In this document: one piece after another, positions 3,825-21,400 of the stretch
Layout of the letters: each line of letters starts with the position of its first letter
How positions within the stretch are numbered: position 1 is the stretch's first letter
NCBI GenBank assembly: GCA_904063045.1
Contig: CAJFCJ010000016.1
Location: forward strand, 372,001 to 436,000
DNA length: 64,000 bases
Source of the DNA: Dimorphilus gyrociliatus
Lineage: Eukaryota > Animalia > Annelida
Direction of reading: 5' to 3'
The notes under the pieces: generated by a model
What the model was told of the DNA's origin: nothing
Seen by the model: the letters and a program-made list of their open reading frames with translations, nothing else
Database searches by the model: none
Translations under genes and position numbers: made by a program

Positions 3825-6671
3825 TTAGGCACTATTATCTGAGCTATGATTATTTAACAAAGGAACTATTTTTGTATCGTTATGATCTGCATTACCATTC
3901 ATATCATTTTGATGAGTATCTTTGGTTTTATCTACGACTATATTATCCATTTCAGTGATACAGTTGCCATTCTTTTGATCAGTTTTAACAGGTCTGCGAT
4001 ATCGCCATCTACCGATTACCGCCAATACTGTTGAAGTAGCGTGTATAAATATTTGTAATACCATCATTTTAAGAGCAAGGGATTTAACGTCATAAAGATC
4101 ACATGATCCTCGAGCACCACATTTACTTTTCCACAATTTACATGCTGAATCAAATATGATTCCCATGCTAAATGGACCAAAAACTGGACCTATATTTAGA
4201 AAAAAAAGGAAATAAGAGAACGTGTTTAATACATTTAGAATAGATTATTGTTTTTTTTTTGAATTAACTAATTGTAATACCAAACTGTAAAGGATATTTT
4301 ATATTCGTTTGTATATATGGGCTTTTTTTTTTAATTAATCCTGTAGTTTAATTTACTAATTGTAAAAGATACTTTAATTTACTTCATAATTCAATAATTT
4401 CTTATATCCTTTTGTTAGTTTTTTATCTACAGTTGATAACTAAACGATTTACCTTTAACCTTCCTTTATTTAAGATAAATTATATGTTATCTCTTTTTTA
4501 GGTTTCAATACTAAAAGTAGAACAAAGGTACTTACTGATGACACGGATACCAATCCATTTTAAGGCTATTGCCATAGGCCTTTGAGGTGCTCCAACAACT
4601 CTTACAGTAGCAGTTGTTGCTAATGTTTGCTCAGCAAAGAGTAAAGCACAAAAAGCAAACACCATACCGAGGAAACCATATAATCTCCAACCGCATCCAG
4701 GATGGGGACAAGGTCCTGCTGTGGCTGTCCTTGATGGACTACTTGTACAGCCGCAACCTTCGAATATCTAATTTTATCAAAATTTATCAATAAAAGATAA
4801 CCTTATTAATAAGAACAGGAGAAGCTTACCGCCGATGAATTGGTTGAAGTACAACCAGCGTGACAAGCTGATTTATACGTATAACCGTCAGCACCACATA
4901 CCGCTTGAATTTCCGCATCAGTGCATTTACAAACTCCAACTGAGCAAGTTTCATTTGAAATTCGCAATTCCGAACCTTGGCAAGGAGTTAATAAAGTGGG
5001 CGCAAAGAGACAGACTGTCAAAGATATAACACAAACCCATGTCATAAGTGTTCGACAAGATAACTTTAGTTTGTTACTGAGGACTGTGGCCGCTATTGTT
5101 CCAACTGGTGCGGCTAATACTAAAGTTAAACCAGCTGCCACAGCAGCACTAGGTGCACTGAGACCAAATCCAGTCTGCACGAGCTTTGGAGCAAAATCAG
5201 CAAATCCATTCGTAGTGGAATAGTTAATGGAATAGTAGAGAGCGAGAGCAACATAGGGACCATTTGTTATAAGTCTTTTGGCGTGTCCCCCTATATCTCT
5301 CCAATGAACAAATATAGCAGTTTCATCATCGTCCTGTCCCTTATGAGCTTCGGTTTTGCGACTCTTCCTCATTAAGTCAGCCCCAGGCAGATCTCTAGGA
5401 AAGGCAGCAATAGGAAGAGCAACAACAGCGGTGGTTACAGCTATAACGATATAGCTTAACCACCAAGCACCTACGAAATTCGGGCTCGATTTAGGAAAGT
5501 CAGGTTTATAGGGCCATGTGTGTGGTAAATTGAGAGTTGCAGCACCTGCTAAATATCCAATTGCTGTTCCTACCATCATCGACATATTCAATGCGGCGAC
5601 AGCTATATTAAATTGTTCCTTTGGCGCAACATCATGCATGTAATTATAAGCCAATGTATTCAATGGTGTATTTCCAAAGGCACATAATATTCTAGCAAAA
5701 ATTAGGGCTACCAGCGCCCAATGAGTAGTGGAAACAAGCTCCGTTCCGACCTTTGAGCATCCTTTGAAATCTGAATCACCGCAAAGACTTATAGTTTCGT
5801 TATCACTATTTTGTAATTGCGGCATATATGTTGTTGATGAGAAATGAGGTATCACTGTAATTACGCACGAAAGACTCAACATTATCATACCAACTGCAAT
5901 GGCTCTAGGTTTATGGCACTGAGCACCTATAAAGAACGATAAATGCATATTACTAAAAAGTAAACATTGGTACATAACTAATTAGGTTAGATCAAATTAT
6001 CTTTCCGACTATAATAAAAGAATAATGACTTTAAAAATTTATAAAAAGCAGCCCTCTATATTTTTTATAATAAGCCTATTCATAATTTCCTGGTTAAAAA
6101 AAGGTTATTGATAATTTTTGATAAGAAAACTCATATAAAATTAGGTTAGAACTATTACGTAATTTTTATATAGGATTATATATAATAAAGATTACATTAT
6201 ATAAAGAAATGACTTTTTAAATCCGCTTATATATAAAATCATTTCTATTGTATATTATAGAAGAAGAAAGAGTTATGATATATAGATATTAAATCTAAAT
6301 CTAAAAGATATCTATTCGTTCAACAAATATATCTATATATAAACTATATAGAACTTCAAAGATATACCTAGAACGCATGCTAAGATTAGAGCTGGAACGC
6401 TTGCGAAATCAAAGATTGCAATGAAAATTGAAGATTGTCTGCTAGTAAATCCAAATCTTTTTTCAACATGTGGTAAGGTAGCACCAACAACTCCGGCAGT
6501 TAAAACAGTTGATAAAATTTTTGCAATGGTTAACCAAAAACAGGCCATAAAGGCGTTGTTGCATTTTTGTAGAACTTTGGGATAGACACCAAATACTCCA
6601 AAACGGTACTGTGATGTGCTATCTGATAGATTGGTGTTAGAATTTCTTTCTCTTTCGTTCAAGGTATGCAT
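3825..6671 (-). CDS. Organic anion transporting polypeptide (OATP/SLCO), 4 coding exons (about 6671-6369, 5928-4830, 4770-4537, 4190-3825)
   Basis: OATP signatures LPHVEKRFGFTSRQSSIFIAIFD, GAQCHKPRAIAVG, NFVGAWWLSY, Kazal-like VCGADGYTYKSACHAGC and GIIFDSACKLWKSKCGARGSCDLYD. Splice phases are consistent. The subfamily cannot be assigned. Confidence 0.95.
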
Positions 6672-10249: not shown

Positions 10250-10795
10250 TTCTACCTCAAAATATAAAAGTAAGCAAATCGACCAAATTTCTCAGACTAT
10301 TTTGTTAATGCTATAATGATTTCTCCAATATATATTTTATGATTAAAAACAGCACTTTATTTTACGAATATTTAGGCGTTTTCGTTCAATAATATTTGGC
10401 AGATCTAATAAACATCCGGGCTCTGAAATATATTCTGCACAGCAGATAATAGTTATTTTCGTATTCGGAATTAATCTATTTTTGAATATAATCAACAATT
10501 TAACAAGTACTACTGTAATTTTTAGATACTATTTTGTTGAATTTTGCAATATAATATGAAAGAATTTTTAATTAACGCGGTGAAATTCAAATTTTTCAAT
10601 CAAAATGAACAGTTCTATACCCCCTCGTTTTTCCCTTTAATAATTAATATTAATCCAATACTTGATCGATTTACAAGCAGTTATTCTTTTGATGTACCAA
10701 GCCAGTCTAGTATTTACACACAATGCAATGCCAATTGTTGTTTAATTCTTTGGTAAATGATTATCAATAATTGAATTTATTTTATCTGAGAGCTC

Positions 10796-10808: not shown

Positions 10809-12480
10809 AAAAAATTGCTATGAAAGCATAATAAAGTTCCTATTAAAATAAAATAAAAACAATTTATTTGGTTTAATGACTATAATCATAAATAGTTAAT
10901 AATCTGTGTTGGTGTCTTTTTCATGCCTGTCCAAAAGTTTACTAATCAAAAGTAAAATCAGCATAAATATTTAATCGAAAAATGTAATATCTTGCTAAGT
11001 AATAGCAGAAAAAAAAGGAATAAAAATAATGTGTCTACTCCCTAAAGTTTTACGCTCTGTTGATGTTTTCTATTAAGGTAATATGATTGCTATTGTACCA
11101 TCGGGTTTACAGTTTTGATTTATGATATGATATTAATTTCCCAGTAGAATTCAGTACTTTTTCTGACAGGAGAAATTATGCATTGTACATTTTTTGTCTT
11201 TAAACAACAGAACATAGATTTGCAATTACCTTTTTTTTTTATTGTTTGAAATTTTTCCTTTCATCTTTTCATTCGAAGTTTGCGGTAAAGATAAAAAGCA
11301 TTTTAAGTGTCATGCTTAGGCAGCAATAAACGATCGAATACTTTTGTACTATAACTCTTTTATTCTATAATAAAATATATATGTACTGTATTGGTGTCTC
11401 ATTGTCCTCCTTTTAAGCCTAATACAGATTATTATTATAGAACAGGTGAATAAGAATTAATAGTAAAAAAATTATCCTAACGCGTTTTCCCTTTTATCCT
11501 AATATGAAAATAAAGCATTAAAGGTTATTTTCGAATTACAGTGTAATTTAATGTCAGAAAGCGTAATTTCTCCTTCAAACCAAAATAATAATGATAATGG
11601 TGTCTTTACTTGAATTTTTAATACAAGTAAACTATATCTCCTTTCAGTTGTCTTTGTTAAAAATTATTATTGTTGTTGTTGCTATTGTTATTATTATTGT
11701 CACACAATATGATTTAGAAATATATGACAGTTTTTGGCAGCTATTGGAGTATCTAATTTCATATTTTTATCCATTGTTACTGTAATTTTACATAGTTCTT
11801 TGTGTAGGTATAAGGAATTGATATACCCTATAAAACTAAGTATTCGCCATTTGCCTTTTAGTCACATTTAAAATTCGTATAATGCAATAATTATTCGATA
11901 ATTCCCCCTCACTCTTCTTACCAACAAGAGTATGAAATTACAAACTGCCATCAAAGTATTGTTTTGTAGAGATACTCTTTAGTACTATTTTGAACTTTGA
12001 AAAAATCGACTTTAAGTACACCATCAAAGATAGAGAAACACTGAAATGGAGAATGTATAATTTCTTATTCGTTTTATCAACTTTCAAATTTTTTCTATTC
12101 GGGATTGATAGTCCTTTTTGACGTTATCAACTGATTAGAATTCGTAAAAAAAAATATTCTTAGGCCTATAAGAATTTTAAAATGGAACCGTATTCCTTTT
12201 CCAGATATATCGTCTATAGACCAGGAACCTGGTCTCATTTCTACCTCAGTTTAAAAATCGAAAAAATCGATTTACCTTAGTCACGTGATCAAGGAAAAAC
12301 AGTTTCAAGTTTTAACTAGATTAGCGTGATTTAATTAAGCTATATCAGCTAATTTAGGAAAAAGTGGACTTTTCCTAACTGAAATAATAAACTAAATCGC
12401 TGATTTCATTTCATCGACTACACAACGTAAAAAGGAACGTCTCACTCGATTAGAAGCACACCTGTCAAGGAATAAAAAGA

Positions 12481-15400
12481 ATGCCAGCTGTAGAAAGCGA
12501 TTTACATGCCATTCGTATGAAATGTCATTTCGATGGGTTAGTTTTACTAGTACTTTGTAGAAAATACTTAATTTGATAGGCAAAATAACACTGAGAAAGA
12601 GCTTTGAATTGTACGCCCGGCCGTATAGTTACATTGAATAATAACTAATCAATGCTTAACACTAAAAACGTTTATTTAAAGTCTTTAATATATTTAATTT
12701 AGGGACATTATGGTTGCGTCAATCGACAATGATATCACTTTTGAAGGAATGAAAATTGAAGTTAGAGATATTTGCAATTTTGATGCTCAACAACCTTTTA
12801 CAATGAAATGGATTGACGAAGAAGGTAAAAATATAAAAAAAAAAATGTTCATTCACACCTACCATCTCACTAAATAGAACTTAAAAAGAAACTGTCAACA
12901 AATAGAACAATTTTTTAAATAACTGTCCAAATATGAATATAAAGACGAAAAACATATTTTTTTTCTATTCTAATAATAATATTAAATAATCAAATCGAAA
13001 AGAAATGAGACGAAAGTTAATCAAGAAAGCTTTAATGAGATAAAATAATTCTTTAGTAGAATAAGAAAGTAAAAGTTTCAAAGTCAATTTCCGTAAAAGT
13101 AAAGAGGAAATTTATTCTGTTATTTACATAGGTATCCAATGACAAAAGTGATAAATCTTTAAAATACGACTTCTAAAGTAACTATGTCTTGTATTTGTTT
13201 CCATTTGTAAAAGATTCTTGTAAAGTAACAATAAAATTGAAACAATATAATATAAAGAAAAAGAAGGTGAACTAAATTAAAAGTAGTTATTACATCTATT
13301 TTCCTATTGTGCTAGGCCTAGTAGATGTATATATATATTAAGGTTAATGGAACTATCATTAGATTTTAGCAATGAAATGTATCGTTTTAGCAAAGTCTAA
13401 TGGAATTTTAAATGAATCAGAAAGTAGACTAGTATCGATTTAATTCCTAGCTAAAGGAAAAAGAAAAAGAAACGCTTAACTTCAATTTGTTTTGAAAGTG
13501 TTAAAAGGAACTATATAAAATTAAATAGGATAAATATGAGAACGTATAAAAAACATACCAAATAAATAAAAACTTAAAAATATGTGTGTTATTATTGCTT
13601 TAAATATTGATTATAATATTTTGCAAACTTGGATAATTTTAATATTGTTGGTATATAGATATATTATATAAACTCCATTATTTTATGTATTGTACCCTCC
13701 CCCCTCATAGGAGACCCTTGTACCGTATCCTCTCAAATAGAATTGGAAGAAATGCTTAGATTGCACGAAGTTAATGCCGATAACGAAGTTACCTTACACG
13801 GTACAGTATTATTTTTTAAAATAGTTTTCTTATCTTGTTTTTTTTTTTTGTAATCGTATTTTTGCTTTTCTCTCTTTTTCTTTCTTTCTATCTCTCTCTC
13901 AACCGATAAACAAAAGTTTTAGGATAAATTATAAATAAATATTAAAAAAAACAAAATTTGCATTGTCTATATTAAAGAAATAGGCCTTATTTGATTTTTA
14001 CGCCGTTTTATTTTATTTCTTTTATTAGATATATTTAATAATGTTTTTTTTGGTATATTGATTATTATACACTAAAAATATGATAATCGACTATTGTCTA
14101 TATTCAATTTATTAATCATTTGTGAAACTGTTAGAAATATGGAATATTTTAAATCATTTTTAAAGATCAGTTCATCAAATTTTATACCCATTTCACCAGT
14201 ATTCCCCAATGTACCCGAACTACCAGGAATGCCGTGTCAAGGCGAAGACCGTGAGTTTTAACATTTACTTTCAATATGTATCACGTGACTTTGACACTTT
14301 CTATCGTCTTGGAAAATATATTGTACCGTTATGGCCTCATTGTGCCAAAAAAAAGGGGGGGGGAGAATGTTTTACCTTTATTGAGAAAAGACTGAATATA
14401 CCAATTCATATAAATTACACAACTGATTACGACTCATAGTGAAGATAAGGAATTGGCCTTAATAAATATACAACTGCAGATATTTGTCATTATTTGGTGT
14501 GAGATAAGTTTATATCTCCTCAGGTTAATGGAATTAGAATAATTATAGAAAAACTTAACTTATTAGTGGACAAGGACAGTATGCACTTGAGACTATTGGG
14601 TCTACAATGGTCAGAAAGCAACGAAAGACAAGGAAAACGAAAAGACAACGAAAGTGTTCATTCAGCATCTGCGCTAAATTTAAATGCATCTTCTACCGTG
14701 CAAGCTAGCTTCGGTGTGCTTAAGAGAGCTGTATCGACAACCATCCACAGAAAAAAGGGAATAAAGAGAGAGCCTGATAATAACAATTTTGACGAGAAAG
14801 ACAATAAATCATTTTTAATATCTCTGAAGAAGAGAATTAGTGAATCTTTTGGGCGAAAAAAAGACAAATTAATAAAGGATGTAGATGAGTCACGTGATAC
14901 AGATGAAGGTATAAAGATTAGAAGTGGTAATGTATTTAAAAATGCTTTTCCAATCAGGGAATATGTATAGAAGAGGAGCAAGACGATGGAGAAAATTATA
15001 TAGAGTTAATGGCCATTTATATCAGGCGAAACGATTTTCCAGGGTAAGGGAATCCTTTCTTTAATATTAATGATATAATGTTATCGAACTGGGAAAAGAA
15101 TACGTTCAGGAATAATATAAGATATAGATGAATAGCATTTAAGTATCTATCACTCTACTTTCTTCCTCATCTATCTTTCTCATTTTTTCTATTCTTTTGT
15201 TTGTTATTATTGTTTTGGGCATAATGAATAATGAATCTAGATTTGACAGCTGCGTTAAGACCAGCTAGTGTCGCTCATTATTGTTATTATATCGTTTGAC
15301 ATTTACAAAATGAAACTAATTCAGATTATGTAGTTTTTTGTTTAGAGTACGATATACAACCCGATCAATAGATGGCGCTAGTCGTTATTGATTAAAATAA

Positions 15401-18400
15401 GATGAATAAAGGTTTACGTGATTTGGCGACACTACAAGTTATAAGTCAGAAACTACTAATTTTAGGTTATAAATGAGAAAATTCTAACCGAATTAAGTGC
15501 CGTGAACGATTTAGCGGCTAAATTTGGGTAATTCACAGTTGATAGGTAAATGCATAATATTTCCTGTATAAATATTCGGTAGGTCAGTAAATACCAATTA
15601 TCCAAACTCGATTTGAAAGAGAAAAATTGTGTACATTCTTAAAATGGATGGTTAGCTATTTTTGTTTCGTCAGACTATTATACAAAGAAGCTATATACTG
15701 TATATAATATATACATTATATACTGTATACTGCATATATGTATAAATTTATATGTATATAATTTATATACTAATATATATATATATATATATTGATACTA
15801 TAAGCTGAGTGTAATAGTATTAAACATGGATTATGGTAGATACTTTCCTAGAAATTAGATTAAATAAGCTATTTCATAGAAAAATATAATAAAAACAAAG
15901 AGGAGGGAGGGGGAAGTAAAAATATAACTAAATATAGCTTTTTCCCTTTTTTCTTTTTTCTTTTCTTTTCCTTTTTGGACGTTAATGTTTTATTGCCTTT
16001 TCTGATTTATTGGATTTATTAAAGTCGACGCAATGTCAATAGGATATCAATTTTTTTATTGTCATTACAAATTAGCTATACTCCTACCCTTGTTTCTTTC
16101 GACGTTGTAGCAATTGTAACCCGATATTAATCCTATCAATGAAAACTACGCTCACTTGCTCCAAATAAAGTTTTTTTTTCTCTAATGTTATCATTCCTCC
16201 CCAAAACCTCTTTTCTTCTCGTATCCCTATCTACAAAGAACACGTTCTGTATATATTAATACTCTTTGAGTTCGATATCACGTTTGGTTAAAATTAGTTG
16301 TTAATCGAATTTTTATATAAATGTATTAATTAGTCTACAATTTTTTATTTTATTTACAGAAAGTGGAATGCGCATTTTGTAATGATGGAATTTGGGGCCT
16401 AGGAAGACAGGGCTATAAATGTGTCAACTGCAAATTGTTGGTTCACAAAAAATGTCACAAACTGATAAAGTTGTCCTGCAGAGCTGTTTTTGTAAGTGTA
16501 TTTTATTAGGCGTATATTTATTCCTTCTTCTTTTCTTTCTATCTTATTTTTAAAAAAAGAATTATTTTATAGGACGCACCAGATAGTAGATTAAAGGTAC
16601 TAAATATAACATCTATACATTATGGTTAACAGTTTTTTTTTCAAAAATTGATAACATTAATAATAATAATAGTAATAAATATAAATATCAATTTTATATT
16701 TTTCTTTGATTGCTTTTTCCTATTAGTGATATCTTAGCTATAGAATTGTCTCATTTAACAGGAAGAAGCTGGACAGACAGCAGCCATTTCTAACAAGAAT
16801 AAAGGCTCTCAAAATGGCGAAAAACGTAATTATTCTATAATTTTCTTTCTTTAATTTTTTTTCATAGTTAATATAATGAGTTTTTACTGTGAAAGAAATA
16901 TAAATAAGAAAAAGAAATATTAGAAAATAGCGTTTTCTTTCATTTTCTCTTTTTAACCAAAAAAAGAGCTATTATATAAAAATGAAAAGAATAAATTTTA
17001 TAGTTGAATGCCTTGGAAAGTTTTCCCTTAAAAAAGAAACAAAAATTGAAAGAAAGAAACGGTTCTTTAAGTAAAATTTTGTAGTTTCTTCTTTTCTTAT
17101 TAGTTTTCTTTCAAAGTGAATATTTACAAGACATTTTGTACTTAATACGATTAATATTTACGGAATGTAAATACAGCTGCATCATCATCGGCGATACAAA
17201 CCCAAATAGCAATGGTAACTGATCAAGTAAATATACGATAATAACTAAATTACTTAGTTCACTTGGACTTTATATTGCTTACTTGTTATTTGTTAATGTT
17301 TTTTTAGATGAGAAAGGAAAATAATCCTGAGAATTGCGAGGTATGTTATTAGTAATTTTGTGAAAAAGTCATTTGTTGTCATTCTTTCTATTTGCAGACA
17401 AGCGCTGTTCAGGTGCAAAAGGTAAATAAATAGTTTATTGGTTATTATTTGTATAACCTTTAAACTTAAACAACTTTTTTTTTTTTGTAGACGGCGGACG
17501 ATTCTGCTCCAACTCGAGGTTTTTCGTTGGAAGATTTTGACTTGATTAATGTTATTGGAAGAGGCTCTTATGCCAAGGTTTGACATTTACACTCTCGCAA
17601 ATTTAGAAATTTACAATTTATCCCTATACAAGAGCGTTTCTAAAAGACAAAAAGTAAAGATAAGTGGTAGAAAATTTCTTTTTAAAACGACCTTATAATT
17701 AATATCTTAAACAGTTTTGTAAAAGAATGGTACAAATTGAATACTGGCTTAGTAGGCGAAAGTAAATGACTGTCAAATTAGATCGTAATAAAGTTATTTA
17801 ATGTTTCCATCCAACCTTCTTCTTAAGCTTGTAAAAAGGAAATAGAAAAGATAGAGAAAGCAAAAAAATATATTGTAAAACTAACAATAAATAATAACCT
17901 TTTTTACTAGAACTATATTTAATGAAGCTGAGTTGAATACTTTCGCTCAAGGTTGTAAATATTATATTATTCATTAATATTTGCTGCTAATTAACATCCT
18001 TAACGAAACCTTTTGATAATTAAATGAGAATATTTTATACTTTTATAATTAAGTTTTAATTATTAAGATAAAGATGGAGGCATAAGTTTTAGAATTGAAC
18101 ACAATCTTAGCATACAGTGTATACATACATAAAGCGAAATAAGGTCGGAGTTTGCCGAGAGCTTTCTTTCCAGTTGTCTACTTTTACTCCTTTACTTGAC
18201 TACTTGATCACGATTGCCGAAATGTACGTGCATAATAGACTATCTGAAACTATTTTATTATAGGTGATGGTTGTCGAGCAAAAGGAAACAAAACGTCTCT
18301 ATGCTATGAAAGTTATTAAGAAAGAAACAGTCGCTAATGAAGAAGATATAGACTGGGTTCAAACTGAGAAACACGTTTTTGAGGTGGCTTCCAACCATCC

Positions 18401-21400
18401 ATTTTTGGTCGGTCTGCACTCCTGCTTTCAGACTCCCAGTCGGCTTTTTTACATAATCGAATTCGTTAACGGCGGAGATTTGATGTTTCACATGCAAAGA
18501 CAAAGGCGTTTGCCAGAGGAGCATGGGAGATTCTATGCCGCTGAGTTATCACTTGCCCTACATTATTTACACGAAAGAGGGATTATTTATAGAGACTTAA
18601 AATTGGATAATGTACTGTTAGATTCGGAAGGTCATATAAAGTTGACAGATTATGGATTATGTAAGGTAATATAAACAGATTTACTTAGTTGTTTTTTTTT
18701 GTGTTTACCTACTTTTTAAGTATGCGGAGTCATTATTCATGATGTCACGCGCTAAATATTTGAACTGTCCTTTACAAAGTTGTGTGGGTGAAAATTCTTC
18801 CTCTTTAATTTTTGGAAACTTCTAAGTAAAAAAAAAATCCATGTTTTATATTGAGTAAAAATTTATCCCTGCCTTCTCATTTTAATCTGTAAGAGAATAT
18901 ACAATATATATGTTTCTATACAAAAAAGAATCGACGAGGGAATAACAGGAAAATGATATGAGAGTATAAAAAGAGGATTTTTGTAGATTTTATATCCAAA
19001 TCTTTAGGGTAGAGTCCATATACTATAAGAAATTCCTATAAAGCAAAAAAATGATAGAAAGGATATAAGACTACAGTAGAAACTTGGGTAGAGATAAAAA
19101 AATAAATAAATCTCCTATTTATGGAATGAAAGAACGCTGGATAATAATTATTTACATTAATATTGAACCAAAACTAATTTCAGTAGAAAGTAAATAAACT
19201 AATCCTCAATCCTAAAGGTTATTAAGATAAGTTTTTTAAGTATTGATGTAAATTATGCTTGTTTTTCTATCAGCTTAAGTGAATTCTTTTGTTTTGAATC
19301 TAGCACCTTTTTTTATGGAATATTCTATGTAATCGGAAATTGAATACGAAATTATGTGAAGTGCACGCATCAAAAGTAACTTAATCAGGAACTCTATTAT
19401 GTTATCTAGCTCACCACTTGCTATATTTAAATATAGTTTTACTGATTTTTGACTTTCAAGTTTGAAAAACAAGAAAAACACAATAATGTGCAAATAATTG
19501 GATTTTTAGAATAAAAGTATACTTAACTGTAGATGCAAAAACGCAAACTAATAGGATTAGATATATTTTTTAGTGGCCGTTTCCTTTGTTTAGCTTTTCC
19601 TTTTGTTTTCCTTTATTATATTTGTGTTAAATATGTTTAAAAGAAGAGGAAAAGAAAGAAAATCGAAATAGAAATACTTTTTTTAAACACCAGCCTGGTG
19701 GAGTAGTGGCGTGGAACGACTCTTATTAAAAAAAAATCTCTTCTGGCGTTTATTTTTAGAATAAATTAGACAAAAATATTTGATATAAAGAGACGGCTTA
19801 CTATATAATAGCTTTAAAATTTTTTACTTACCTCCAGTGTTAAATCCTTAATATTCAAACAAAATTTTTTATTGAATTATTCAAATTGAATATTAAAAAA
19901 CCCTCTTTTTATCGCTTCCTAAGTGAATTTACTGTAAATTATTTATATACACAAAACCCTATTCCTATTAAAGCCCATGGGTCGATAAATGCTTTATTTC
20001 ATTATCTTAAATATGTTAATCTTAGATCCGACTTGTATTTTTCTTATCGTATATTTAATGACTCAATTAAACTAATTTTTTATACTGCAAAACAAGTTGG
20101 CTTATACTTTGCAAGAGAGCTCGGAGATTATCTCATTGAAAAGATCTCATTTATCTTTTTATCTTAAAGATGTGGTCTTATTTAAAGGAAGAGCATATAT
20201 ATATATAATTAGCTATACTTTATGATACACAAAAATGAATTTACCAGATACGCCTTTGTGGACAAAGGAACCTTAAAAGGTATAAAACCGTTCTTTATAG
20301 CTACGAAACAAAGAGAGGCGATTCCTTATTCCAAAGTGGTTAAGGACGTCGATAACAGCATAGCTATCCATTATTGAAATGAAGGATATATCGATCACCT
20401 ATATATTTCTATACACTTGTATATATATATATTTATATATATAAATATACTATATGTAATTGTGCTAATAATATATCCTTGGGTGATTTCGGCGATGCGA
20501 TAAAAATCTTATGAATGAATCTATTAATAAAAGTCGAATGACTTGTAATAACCTTAAAATGCAAATGACATCTTGTTGTGAAGCGTGTGAAGTGTATCTG
20601 TGCTATATACTACACATTAGGCGTCTTCTCTAGATTAATTAAACTTTGAACTTATTTTCAAAGGAAAATCTGGCTCCTGGGGAACTGACGGCGACCTTCT
20701 GTGGGACACCAAATTATATTGCTCCTGAAATGCTACGAGGACAAGAGTATGGTAACTATCAAATACCCTGAACTAATTGGAAGATCAAATGTGTAATTTA
20801 TCAAAATTAATTATAATCTAGGCTATAGTGTTGACTGGTGGGCACTTGGAGTACTTATGTTTGAAATGTTAGTTGGTCGATCACCCTTTGAAATTGTTGG
20901 TCAGACTGATAATCCTGATCAAGATACTGAAGATTATCTATTTCAAGGTAGAAATATTTATTTCTCATAGAAAAAATTTAATATTGTTCGCAGAGCAATT
21001 AAACGATATTTAATAGTTTGATCTACACTTCGACAGGGTTTTTGAACTTTTAATACATTTTATTTCCTTTTTAGTAATCTTGGAAAAGCCGATTAGGATT
21101 CCCCGTTCATTAACTGTCAAAGCTGCAGGCGTATTAAAAGGATTTCTAAATAAGGTTTGTAAATCGGATTTATATATATTTTTTAATTGTACTATTTTAA
21201 GCATTATGATAATAAATTTCTATTTGCTTTTTCCCTTGCTGTAAAAGATCTTGATTTATTTCTGTTTTTCTATATTATTTAACTGAAGGGGCTGATTAAA
21301 ATGCTGATAAAATAAAGTTAGTGGGGAGCATGTGAGAGGGAGTAAAGGTTGTAAACATTCCAGACTATTAATCCCATTAAAGATTGTCGAAAATTCGATA

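Follow-up and report, generated by a model that had tools for sequence, protein, structure and literature searches.

Five tiny hinge exons in the atypical PKC gene of the annelid Dimorphilus gyrociliatus, one of them a spiralian mini-exon and candidate splice switch

Does the atypical protein kinase C (aPKC) gene of the annelid Dimorphilus gyrociliatus carry a splice switch in the hinge between its C1 and kinase domains, and could such a switch bear on the formation of PKM, the constitutively active form of the kinase? The question is raised by a 64,000-nucleotide stretch of contig CAJFCJ010000016.1 (positions 372,001 to 436,000), referred to here as the window. A sequence-only reading of this stretch had picked out five tiny exons between C1 and the kinase domain, three of them symmetric, together with two adjacent ATG codons, and had proposed a combinatorial, probably neural, control of PKM. 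The molluscan precedent to which it appealed is as described: PKC Apl III of Aplysia has two hinge splice inserts that contain the main calpain site (PMC6539039, PMC5650170), and a hinge cassette enriched in the nervous system favours calpain cleavage to PKM (PMC5650170).

The hinge belongs to a gene that occupies ~12.7-24.95 kb of the + strand of the window, as delineated by stop-free stretches and by tblastn with database aPKCs; all coordinates given here refer to that strand. The window as a whole is AT-rich, with about 30% G+C. The encoded regions follow the aPKC order of PB1, pseudosubstrate, a single C1 domain, no C2 domain, kinase and C-tail. A PB1 exon (12704-12826) was placed by tblastn alignment to the PB1 region of aPKC proteins, the Pfam PB1 match on this single exon being weak and below the cut-off (E=0.0019), and tblastn with aPKCs likewise places the pseudosubstrate exon, with its ten-residue motif, at 14960-15043. 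The C1 exon, or C1b (16360-16491; 132 nt, phase 0/0), is recognized by Pfam C1_1 with E=1e-13 on 16330-16506, the largest kinase exon lies at 18264-18665, the Pfam Pkinase match has E=1.5e-33, and the C-terminal exon ends in ...SQEDCV. The 134-aa kinase exon finds its best database relatives among aPKCs (83-85% identity), and the closest proteins of full length, with 78% identity over 503 aa, come from spiralians. The gene is present once in the 77.9-Mb, 349-contig assembly, where the runner-up match to the kinase exon is only 53% identical. Its predicted PB1, pseudosubstrate plus C1, and kinase/C-tail regions identify it as an aPKC of the PKC iota/zeta type. Search queries were single window exons, left unjoined, or database proteins, and no aPKC protein or transcript of the species itself was found in the protein collections with the kinase exon, with a profile of aPKC plus exon rows, or with the nearest full-length relative. 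The last two queries did bring up many aPKCs of spiralians. The profile consisted of database aPKC and separate rows for the window exons, of which only the cleanly placed ones were kept, as MAFFT scattered the short hinge pieces.

The C1 exon forms the upstream anchor of the hinge; it is 90% identical to its counterpart in L004, a contig from a related species introduced below, and measures 132 nt also in Aplysia, in a chiton, in Lingula and in Paralvinella. A Helix isoform that lacks a 132-base C1 segment is on record (PMC6539039), so that, with a worm C1 exon of 132 nt in phase 0/0, an in-frame worm isoform devoid of C1 is arithmetically possible. At the downstream border lies exon F (17491-17577; 87 nt), which was identified by tblastn to aPKC proteins and encodes the end of the hinge and the start of the kinase domain with its glycine-rich loop. 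It starts where the kinase-start exon (162-168 nt) starts in Aplysia, chiton, Lingula and Paralvinella; what is one exon in those species is interrupted in the worm by a 686-nt intron (17577/18264, between ...SYAK and V...).

Between these borders lie five tiny exons, termed A to E. Exon A (16573-16596; 24 nt, DAPDSRLK, phase 0/0) is flanked by tatag and gtacta; exon B (16762-16825; 64 nt, phase 0/1) ends in ...SQNGEK; exon C (17177-17214; 38 nt, phase 1/0) ends in an ATG and together with B amounts to 102 nt. Exon D (17308-17340; 33 nt, 11 residues, phase 0/0) begins with an ATG between ttttag and gtatgt, and is separated by an intron of 57 nt, with no further exon inside, from exon E (17398-17421; 24 nt, TSAVQVQK, phase 0/0), which is flanked by ttgcag and gtaaat. 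Direct reading of the sequence bears out the position of all five exons, the symmetry of A, D and E, and the meeting of two ATG codons (17212-17214 and 17308-17310) at the 17214/17308 junction. It also bears out a second donor within E, an internal GT at 17413 that follows the first 15 nt and defines a nested form (17398-17412, TSAVQ).

Sequence by itself proves none of these exons, since the 1-kb interval of the hinge contains 14 open in-frame AG..GT segments of 15-45 nt of the type expected by chance. Ten of them are additional to the claimed exons, and it could be argued on this ground that some of the tiny exons are likewise chance segments that are never spliced in. A comparison is offered by two Logan contigs, L004 and L005, which represent genomic DNA of a different, related species and were reached by a word search with the kinase exon. 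The 135-aa product encoded there is 100% identical to that of the worm kinase exon whilst the DNA is 87% identical, the differences being essentially all synonymous, and introns are ~60% identical. L004 is collinear with window positions 11929-19441. In this contig A, D, E and the 15-nt form of E keep their AG, their GT, their frame and their open reading, whereas 10/10 decoy AG..GT segments, taken as a control, drop at least one splice dinucleotide. Exon A has 22/24 nt in common with L004, against 60% and 40% identity in its two flanks, and its AG and GT are kept. Exon B differs by a 3-nt in-frame indel, longer in L004, with sites and frame intact, and its QNGEK motif is common to the hinges of Aplysia and Biomphalaria. 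Exon C is 82% identical with intact sites, the 50 nt upstream of it being 74% identical. Exon D reads IKEENDPRNCE, with sites, length and frame preserved and synonymous sites that vary freely, and exon E reads SFPVQVNK, with its acceptor and both donors intact. The exons are taken as real because all five keep their sites and frame in L004, the decoys fail and B carries QNGEK. Survival in L004 is confined to the claimed exons, B possesses a motif found across phyla, and E combines a T-x-x-V-E/Q motif with nested donors, as set out below; an origin as chance segments is scarcely credible in the face of these observations. Judged by this comparison, A to E are all genuine and code for the aPKC hinge.

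How such a hinge is built elsewhere was examined by mapping the hinge exons of three fetched genes, those of Aplysia, the chiton and Lingula; isoforms were obtained from NCBI by cluster look-up, and cassette status in these and other species is that annotated by the NCBI pipeline. Beginning with the C1 exon, the series of exon lengths is 132, 24, 64, 38, 33, 24 and 87 nt in the window. In Aplysia it is 132, 84, 42, 27, 48, 15 and 165, with the 27-nt and 48-nt exons alternative and the 15-nt exon encoding TAKVE; in the chiton it is 132, 99, 33, 24 and 165, with an alternative 24-nt exon encoding NAHVEVEQ; in Lingula it is 132, 129, 48 and 168, with an alternative 48-nt exon that begins TTKVE. 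In the genes examined from mollusc, brachiopod and annelid, the linker is pieced together from small exons, and the aligned spiralian hinges have, immediately 5' of the kinase-start exon, between one and three short cassettes that preserve the frame. The listed isoforms differ by cassettes of 9 aa and 16 aa in Aplysia (X2 lacks the 16 and X3 all 25), by two cassettes in all four combinations in Biomphalaria, by 10 aa in Haliotis, by 12 aa in Mya and Ruditapes, by 14 aa plus 5-6 aa in three scallops, by 8 aa in the chiton Liolophura, by 5 aa (TVKVE) in the vent snail Gigantopelta and by 16 aa in the brachiopod Lingula.

Against this background, exon E falls into a class of mini-exons that we define by a length of 15-48 nt, phase 0/0, a position directly 5' of the kinase-start exon and V-E/Q at residues 4-5. 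A T/S-x-x-V-E/Q start is common to E and to the pre-kinase mini-exon of chiton, Aplysia and Lingula, and when the relevant introns of the window, L004, chiton, Aplysia and Lingula are scanned for T-x-x-V-E/Q, it is precisely this exon that comes up in each. The mapped hinge series show, moreover, that D and E have the sizes and the order of the 33-nt and 24-nt exons of the chiton. Donors nested after 15 and 24 nt are found alike in the chiton exon, in worm E and in L004, which makes the second donor at 15 nt, previously noted from the window sequence, probably an old feature; the donor of the 15-nt Aplysia exon occupies the position of the internal GTG. By position and motif, E is thus classed as an orthologue of an old spiralian mini-exon. 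In another annelid, Paralvinella, the gene was scanned for the motif as well, and no convincing T-x-x-V-E/Q mini-exon came to light. The Paralvinella gene model (L009) has two hinge exons, 5578-5685 (108 nt) and 10607-10717 (111 nt), neither of which occurs in a close relative's transcript (P0352); they are alternative exons or else errors of prediction.

The annotated use of this mini-exon varies between lineages. Isoforms differ by the E-equivalent exon itself in Liolophura, Gigantopelta, the scallops and Lingula, and by neighbouring inserts in Aplysia and Biomphalaria; in Aplysia the 15-nt E-equivalent (TAKVE) is constant and occurs in 4/4 listed protein isoforms. The inserts of Aplysia were derived from its NCBI isoforms, in which a 25-aa region matches the two published inserts. 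They lie between the equivalents of D and E, where the worm has its 57-nt intron, and there is therefore no worm exon orthologous to them; the alignment with the Aplysia inserts that the sequence-only reading had suggested as a check accordingly leaves the 27-nt and 48-nt cassettes without a worm counterpart.

The same reading had attributed in-frame skipping to A and D as well as to E. Of this proposal of a hinge splice switch, the part that concerns E stands, as a credible candidate backed by cassette use in homologues and by constraint, and the part that concerns A and D finds no skipping in homologues, where every annotated isoform examined includes their counterparts. At its start exon A resembles the exon that opens the hinge of Aplysia (DIPE...), a region that is constant in other species, and the stretch divided into A, B and C in the worm is a single exon, the first of the hinge, in Aplysia, chiton, Lingula and Paralvinella. 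The chiton 33-nt exon has the size and rank of D and is part of both annotated chiton isoforms. Cassettes directly after the C1 exon, the position of exon A, do exist in amphioxus (X19 versus X21; +17 residues in P0512 versus P0490) and in an annelid-like transcript (+27 residues in P0427 versus P0278), so that skipping of A is possible but unsupported. These facts also bear on a model in which A, D and E would be independent cassettes, used in combination and mainly in neurons to control a constitutively active PKM. All three exons are indeed phase 0/0, A is free of synonymous change, cassettes after C1 occur in the two cases just named, Biomphalaria combines its two hinge cassettes in every way, and the hinge cassette enriched in the Aplysia nervous system has a calpain site (PMC5650170). 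However, the evolution of D is unremarkable for an exon and both annotated chiton isoforms include its counterpart, A aligns with a constant first-hinge-exon start, the calpain-site inserts of Aplysia have no counterpart in the worm and neither UGC nor another neural motif is conserved, all of which renders three independent cassettes quite improbable.

A further line of evidence for E is provided by the pattern of constraint. Relative to L004, synonymous divergence (pS) is 0 in A and E, compared with 0.39-0.65 in C1b, PB1b, F and the kinase exon K2; this value is reached despite several amino-acid changes, and covers about 10 synonymous sites in all, in one relative. The 69-nt intron between E and F is 84% identical to L004, against an intron mean of 60%, and ranks 2/12. 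It harbours a conserved element immediately after E (17422-17477), of which the first 50 nt are 94% identical, and a 12-bp hairpin at 17432-17466 folds in both worm and L004 with modest z values of -2.1 and -2.4, one stem change between the two being accommodated as a G-U pair. An Rfam scan of 14000-19500 gave no match, and the conserved intron element is therefore one without a known RNA family. Regulated small exons usually show a conservation pattern of this kind, and the conservation of E and its intron, in the one relative compared, suggests regulation. The UGC near the acceptor of E is absent in L004, the acceptors of A and D lack UGC, and no conserved neural motif was found at these exons. 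Elsewhere in the gene, the pseudosubstrate region (14960-15133) has a pS of 0.12, against the 0.39-0.65 of C1b, PB1b, F and K2, and the next 50 nt are 94% identical. The intron at 14253-14566 is, at 86% identity to L004, the highest of the 12 introns (mean 60%), and precedes a 342-nt open segment (14567-14908) whose length is unchanged in L004, at 79.5% identity. Two blocks of at least 85% identity to L004, at 15366-15613 and 15978-16169 in the 1.3-kb intron between pseudosubstrate and C1, are candidate regulatory elements or an alternative first exon, and conserved non-coding blocks at 18151-18259 and 18666-18788 adjoin the large kinase exon on both sides.

These observations have to be weighed against the view that all five exons are constitutive and that the hinge is merely chopped up in an intron-dense gene, with no switch at all. 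Together the five exons make a hinge of ordinary length in comparison with relatives, the equivalents of A, B, C and D occur in all annotated isoforms examined, and the orthologous 15-nt exon of Aplysia is part of every isoform listed. The splice sites of D, E and F are good, and the introns around them are short, close to the species median of 66 bp (PMC7854359). This view is, however, at odds with the use of the E-equivalent as a cassette in four other lineages, and neither the unchanged synonymous sites of A and E nor the conserved E-F intron can be put down to coding need alone; we regard the constitutive view as possible, if on the unlikely side. The reading that we favour, and to which we attach somewhat better than even probability, is that these are genuine hinge exons of which A to D most likely encode ordinary linker, whilst E is a spiralian mini-exon subject to a regulated splice choice. 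We infer the alternative use of E in the worm from cassette use elsewhere and from constraint. Points on the other side are that the strong splice sites of E also fit constant inclusion, that its Aplysia orthologue occurs in all four listed isoforms, that no counterpart mini-exon was found in Paralvinella, that the UGC at the acceptor of E is not conserved in L004 and that the z values of the hairpin are modest. Under the favoured reading, a T/S-x-x-V-E/Q mini-exon would optionally be lengthened by V-E/Q-Q/K through a donor 9 nt downstream. E would be skipped, included as 15 nt or included as 24 nt, and the linker adjoining the kinase domain would change by 0, 5 or 8 residues. The near-invariant intron segment and hairpin directly 3' of the exon would steer this choice.

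The two ATG codons at the junction of C and D had prompted a separate suggestion, namely that a short PKM-like protein is initiated there, an internal promoter being used in the manner of vertebrate PKMzeta. The codons do meet at 17214/17308, and conserved non-coding blocks in upstream introns could in principle be promoters. Both codons, however, specify isoleucine in L004 (ATA and ATT), the hinge of which contains no methionine, and a PKM initiated at a hinge methionine is for this reason unsupported. The vertebrate PKMzeta methionine, for its part, sits elsewhere, directly after C1 (P0010). It is reported to be vertebrate-specific, having reportedly arisen with a vertebrate gene duplication, whilst invertebrates reportedly use proteolysis (PMC3517905), and no internal start came out of 5' RACE in Aplysia (PMC6539039). 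Initiation at the junction codons is very unlikely in the light of these data, and a tempting but unsupported idea for the worm is thereby set aside. PKM formation and a hinge-methionine start are, for the worm, matters of analogy only, and any effect of E on cleavage to PKM would be speculative.

What this locus does offer is one mini-exon, nested donors included, that is common to an annelid and a chiton. As an old splice switch beside a kinase domain, E is a concrete candidate, and one that can be tested at little cost in a worm whose genome is tiny and tractable. A literature search on microexons in the aPKC hinge found no paper on the subject. To our knowledge, Aplysia, where PKM is memory-related, is the only case in which alternative hinge cassettes of aPKC have been linked to a function. 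A more far-reaching proposal holds that the E switch is an ancient spiralian one which predates the split of annelids, molluscs and brachiopods, and that regulated, possibly neuronal, inclusion of the exon sets the release of PKM. We consider this proposal rather improbable; if true, it would make the memory-kinase mechanism of Aplysia one branch of a much older system.

The closest known parallel to worm E is the cassette of the chiton Liolophura sinensis aPKC (X1/X2, P0262/P0261), which agrees with it in rank, in its 24 nt, in phase, in the nested 15-nt donor and in being preceded by a 33-nt exon, and the peptide of which, NAHVEVEQ, resembles TSAVQVQK. Skipping is annotated by the NCBI pipeline in the chiton, whereas in the worm it is what we infer, and the upstream hinge, which a single 99-nt exon encodes in the chiton, is spread over A, B and C in the worm. 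Compared with the bilaterian neural microexon programme of the Srrm/eMIC type, the worm locus has in common 24-nt in-frame exons, a disordered linker in a signalling protein and a conserved flanking intron; it differs in that its acceptors lack a conserved UGC and in that D, at 33 nt, exceeds the 27 nt that are the usual upper size of neural microexons. Vertebrate PKMzeta is a kinase without regulatory domain derived from an aPKC gene, as a PKM in the worm would be, but it is produced by way of transcription start and translation rather than cassette splicing, and from a methionine directly after C1, whereas the methionine codons of the worm lie elsewhere and are not conserved in its relative. 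Aplysia PKC Apl III, finally, resembles the worm gene in family, in the part of the protein concerned and in a hinge that is a string of tiny exons, but it has in-frame cassettes of 27 nt and 48 nt before the kinase-start exon, absent from X2/X3, that the worm lacks. Worm E corresponds to the TAKVE exon of Aplysia, constant in the listed isoforms, rather than to its inserts, and it is for Aplysia alone that enrichment in the nervous system and calpain cleavage have been shown. The worm gene can be placed, as the annelid representative, in a spiralian system of tiny hinge exons that resembles that of Aplysia.
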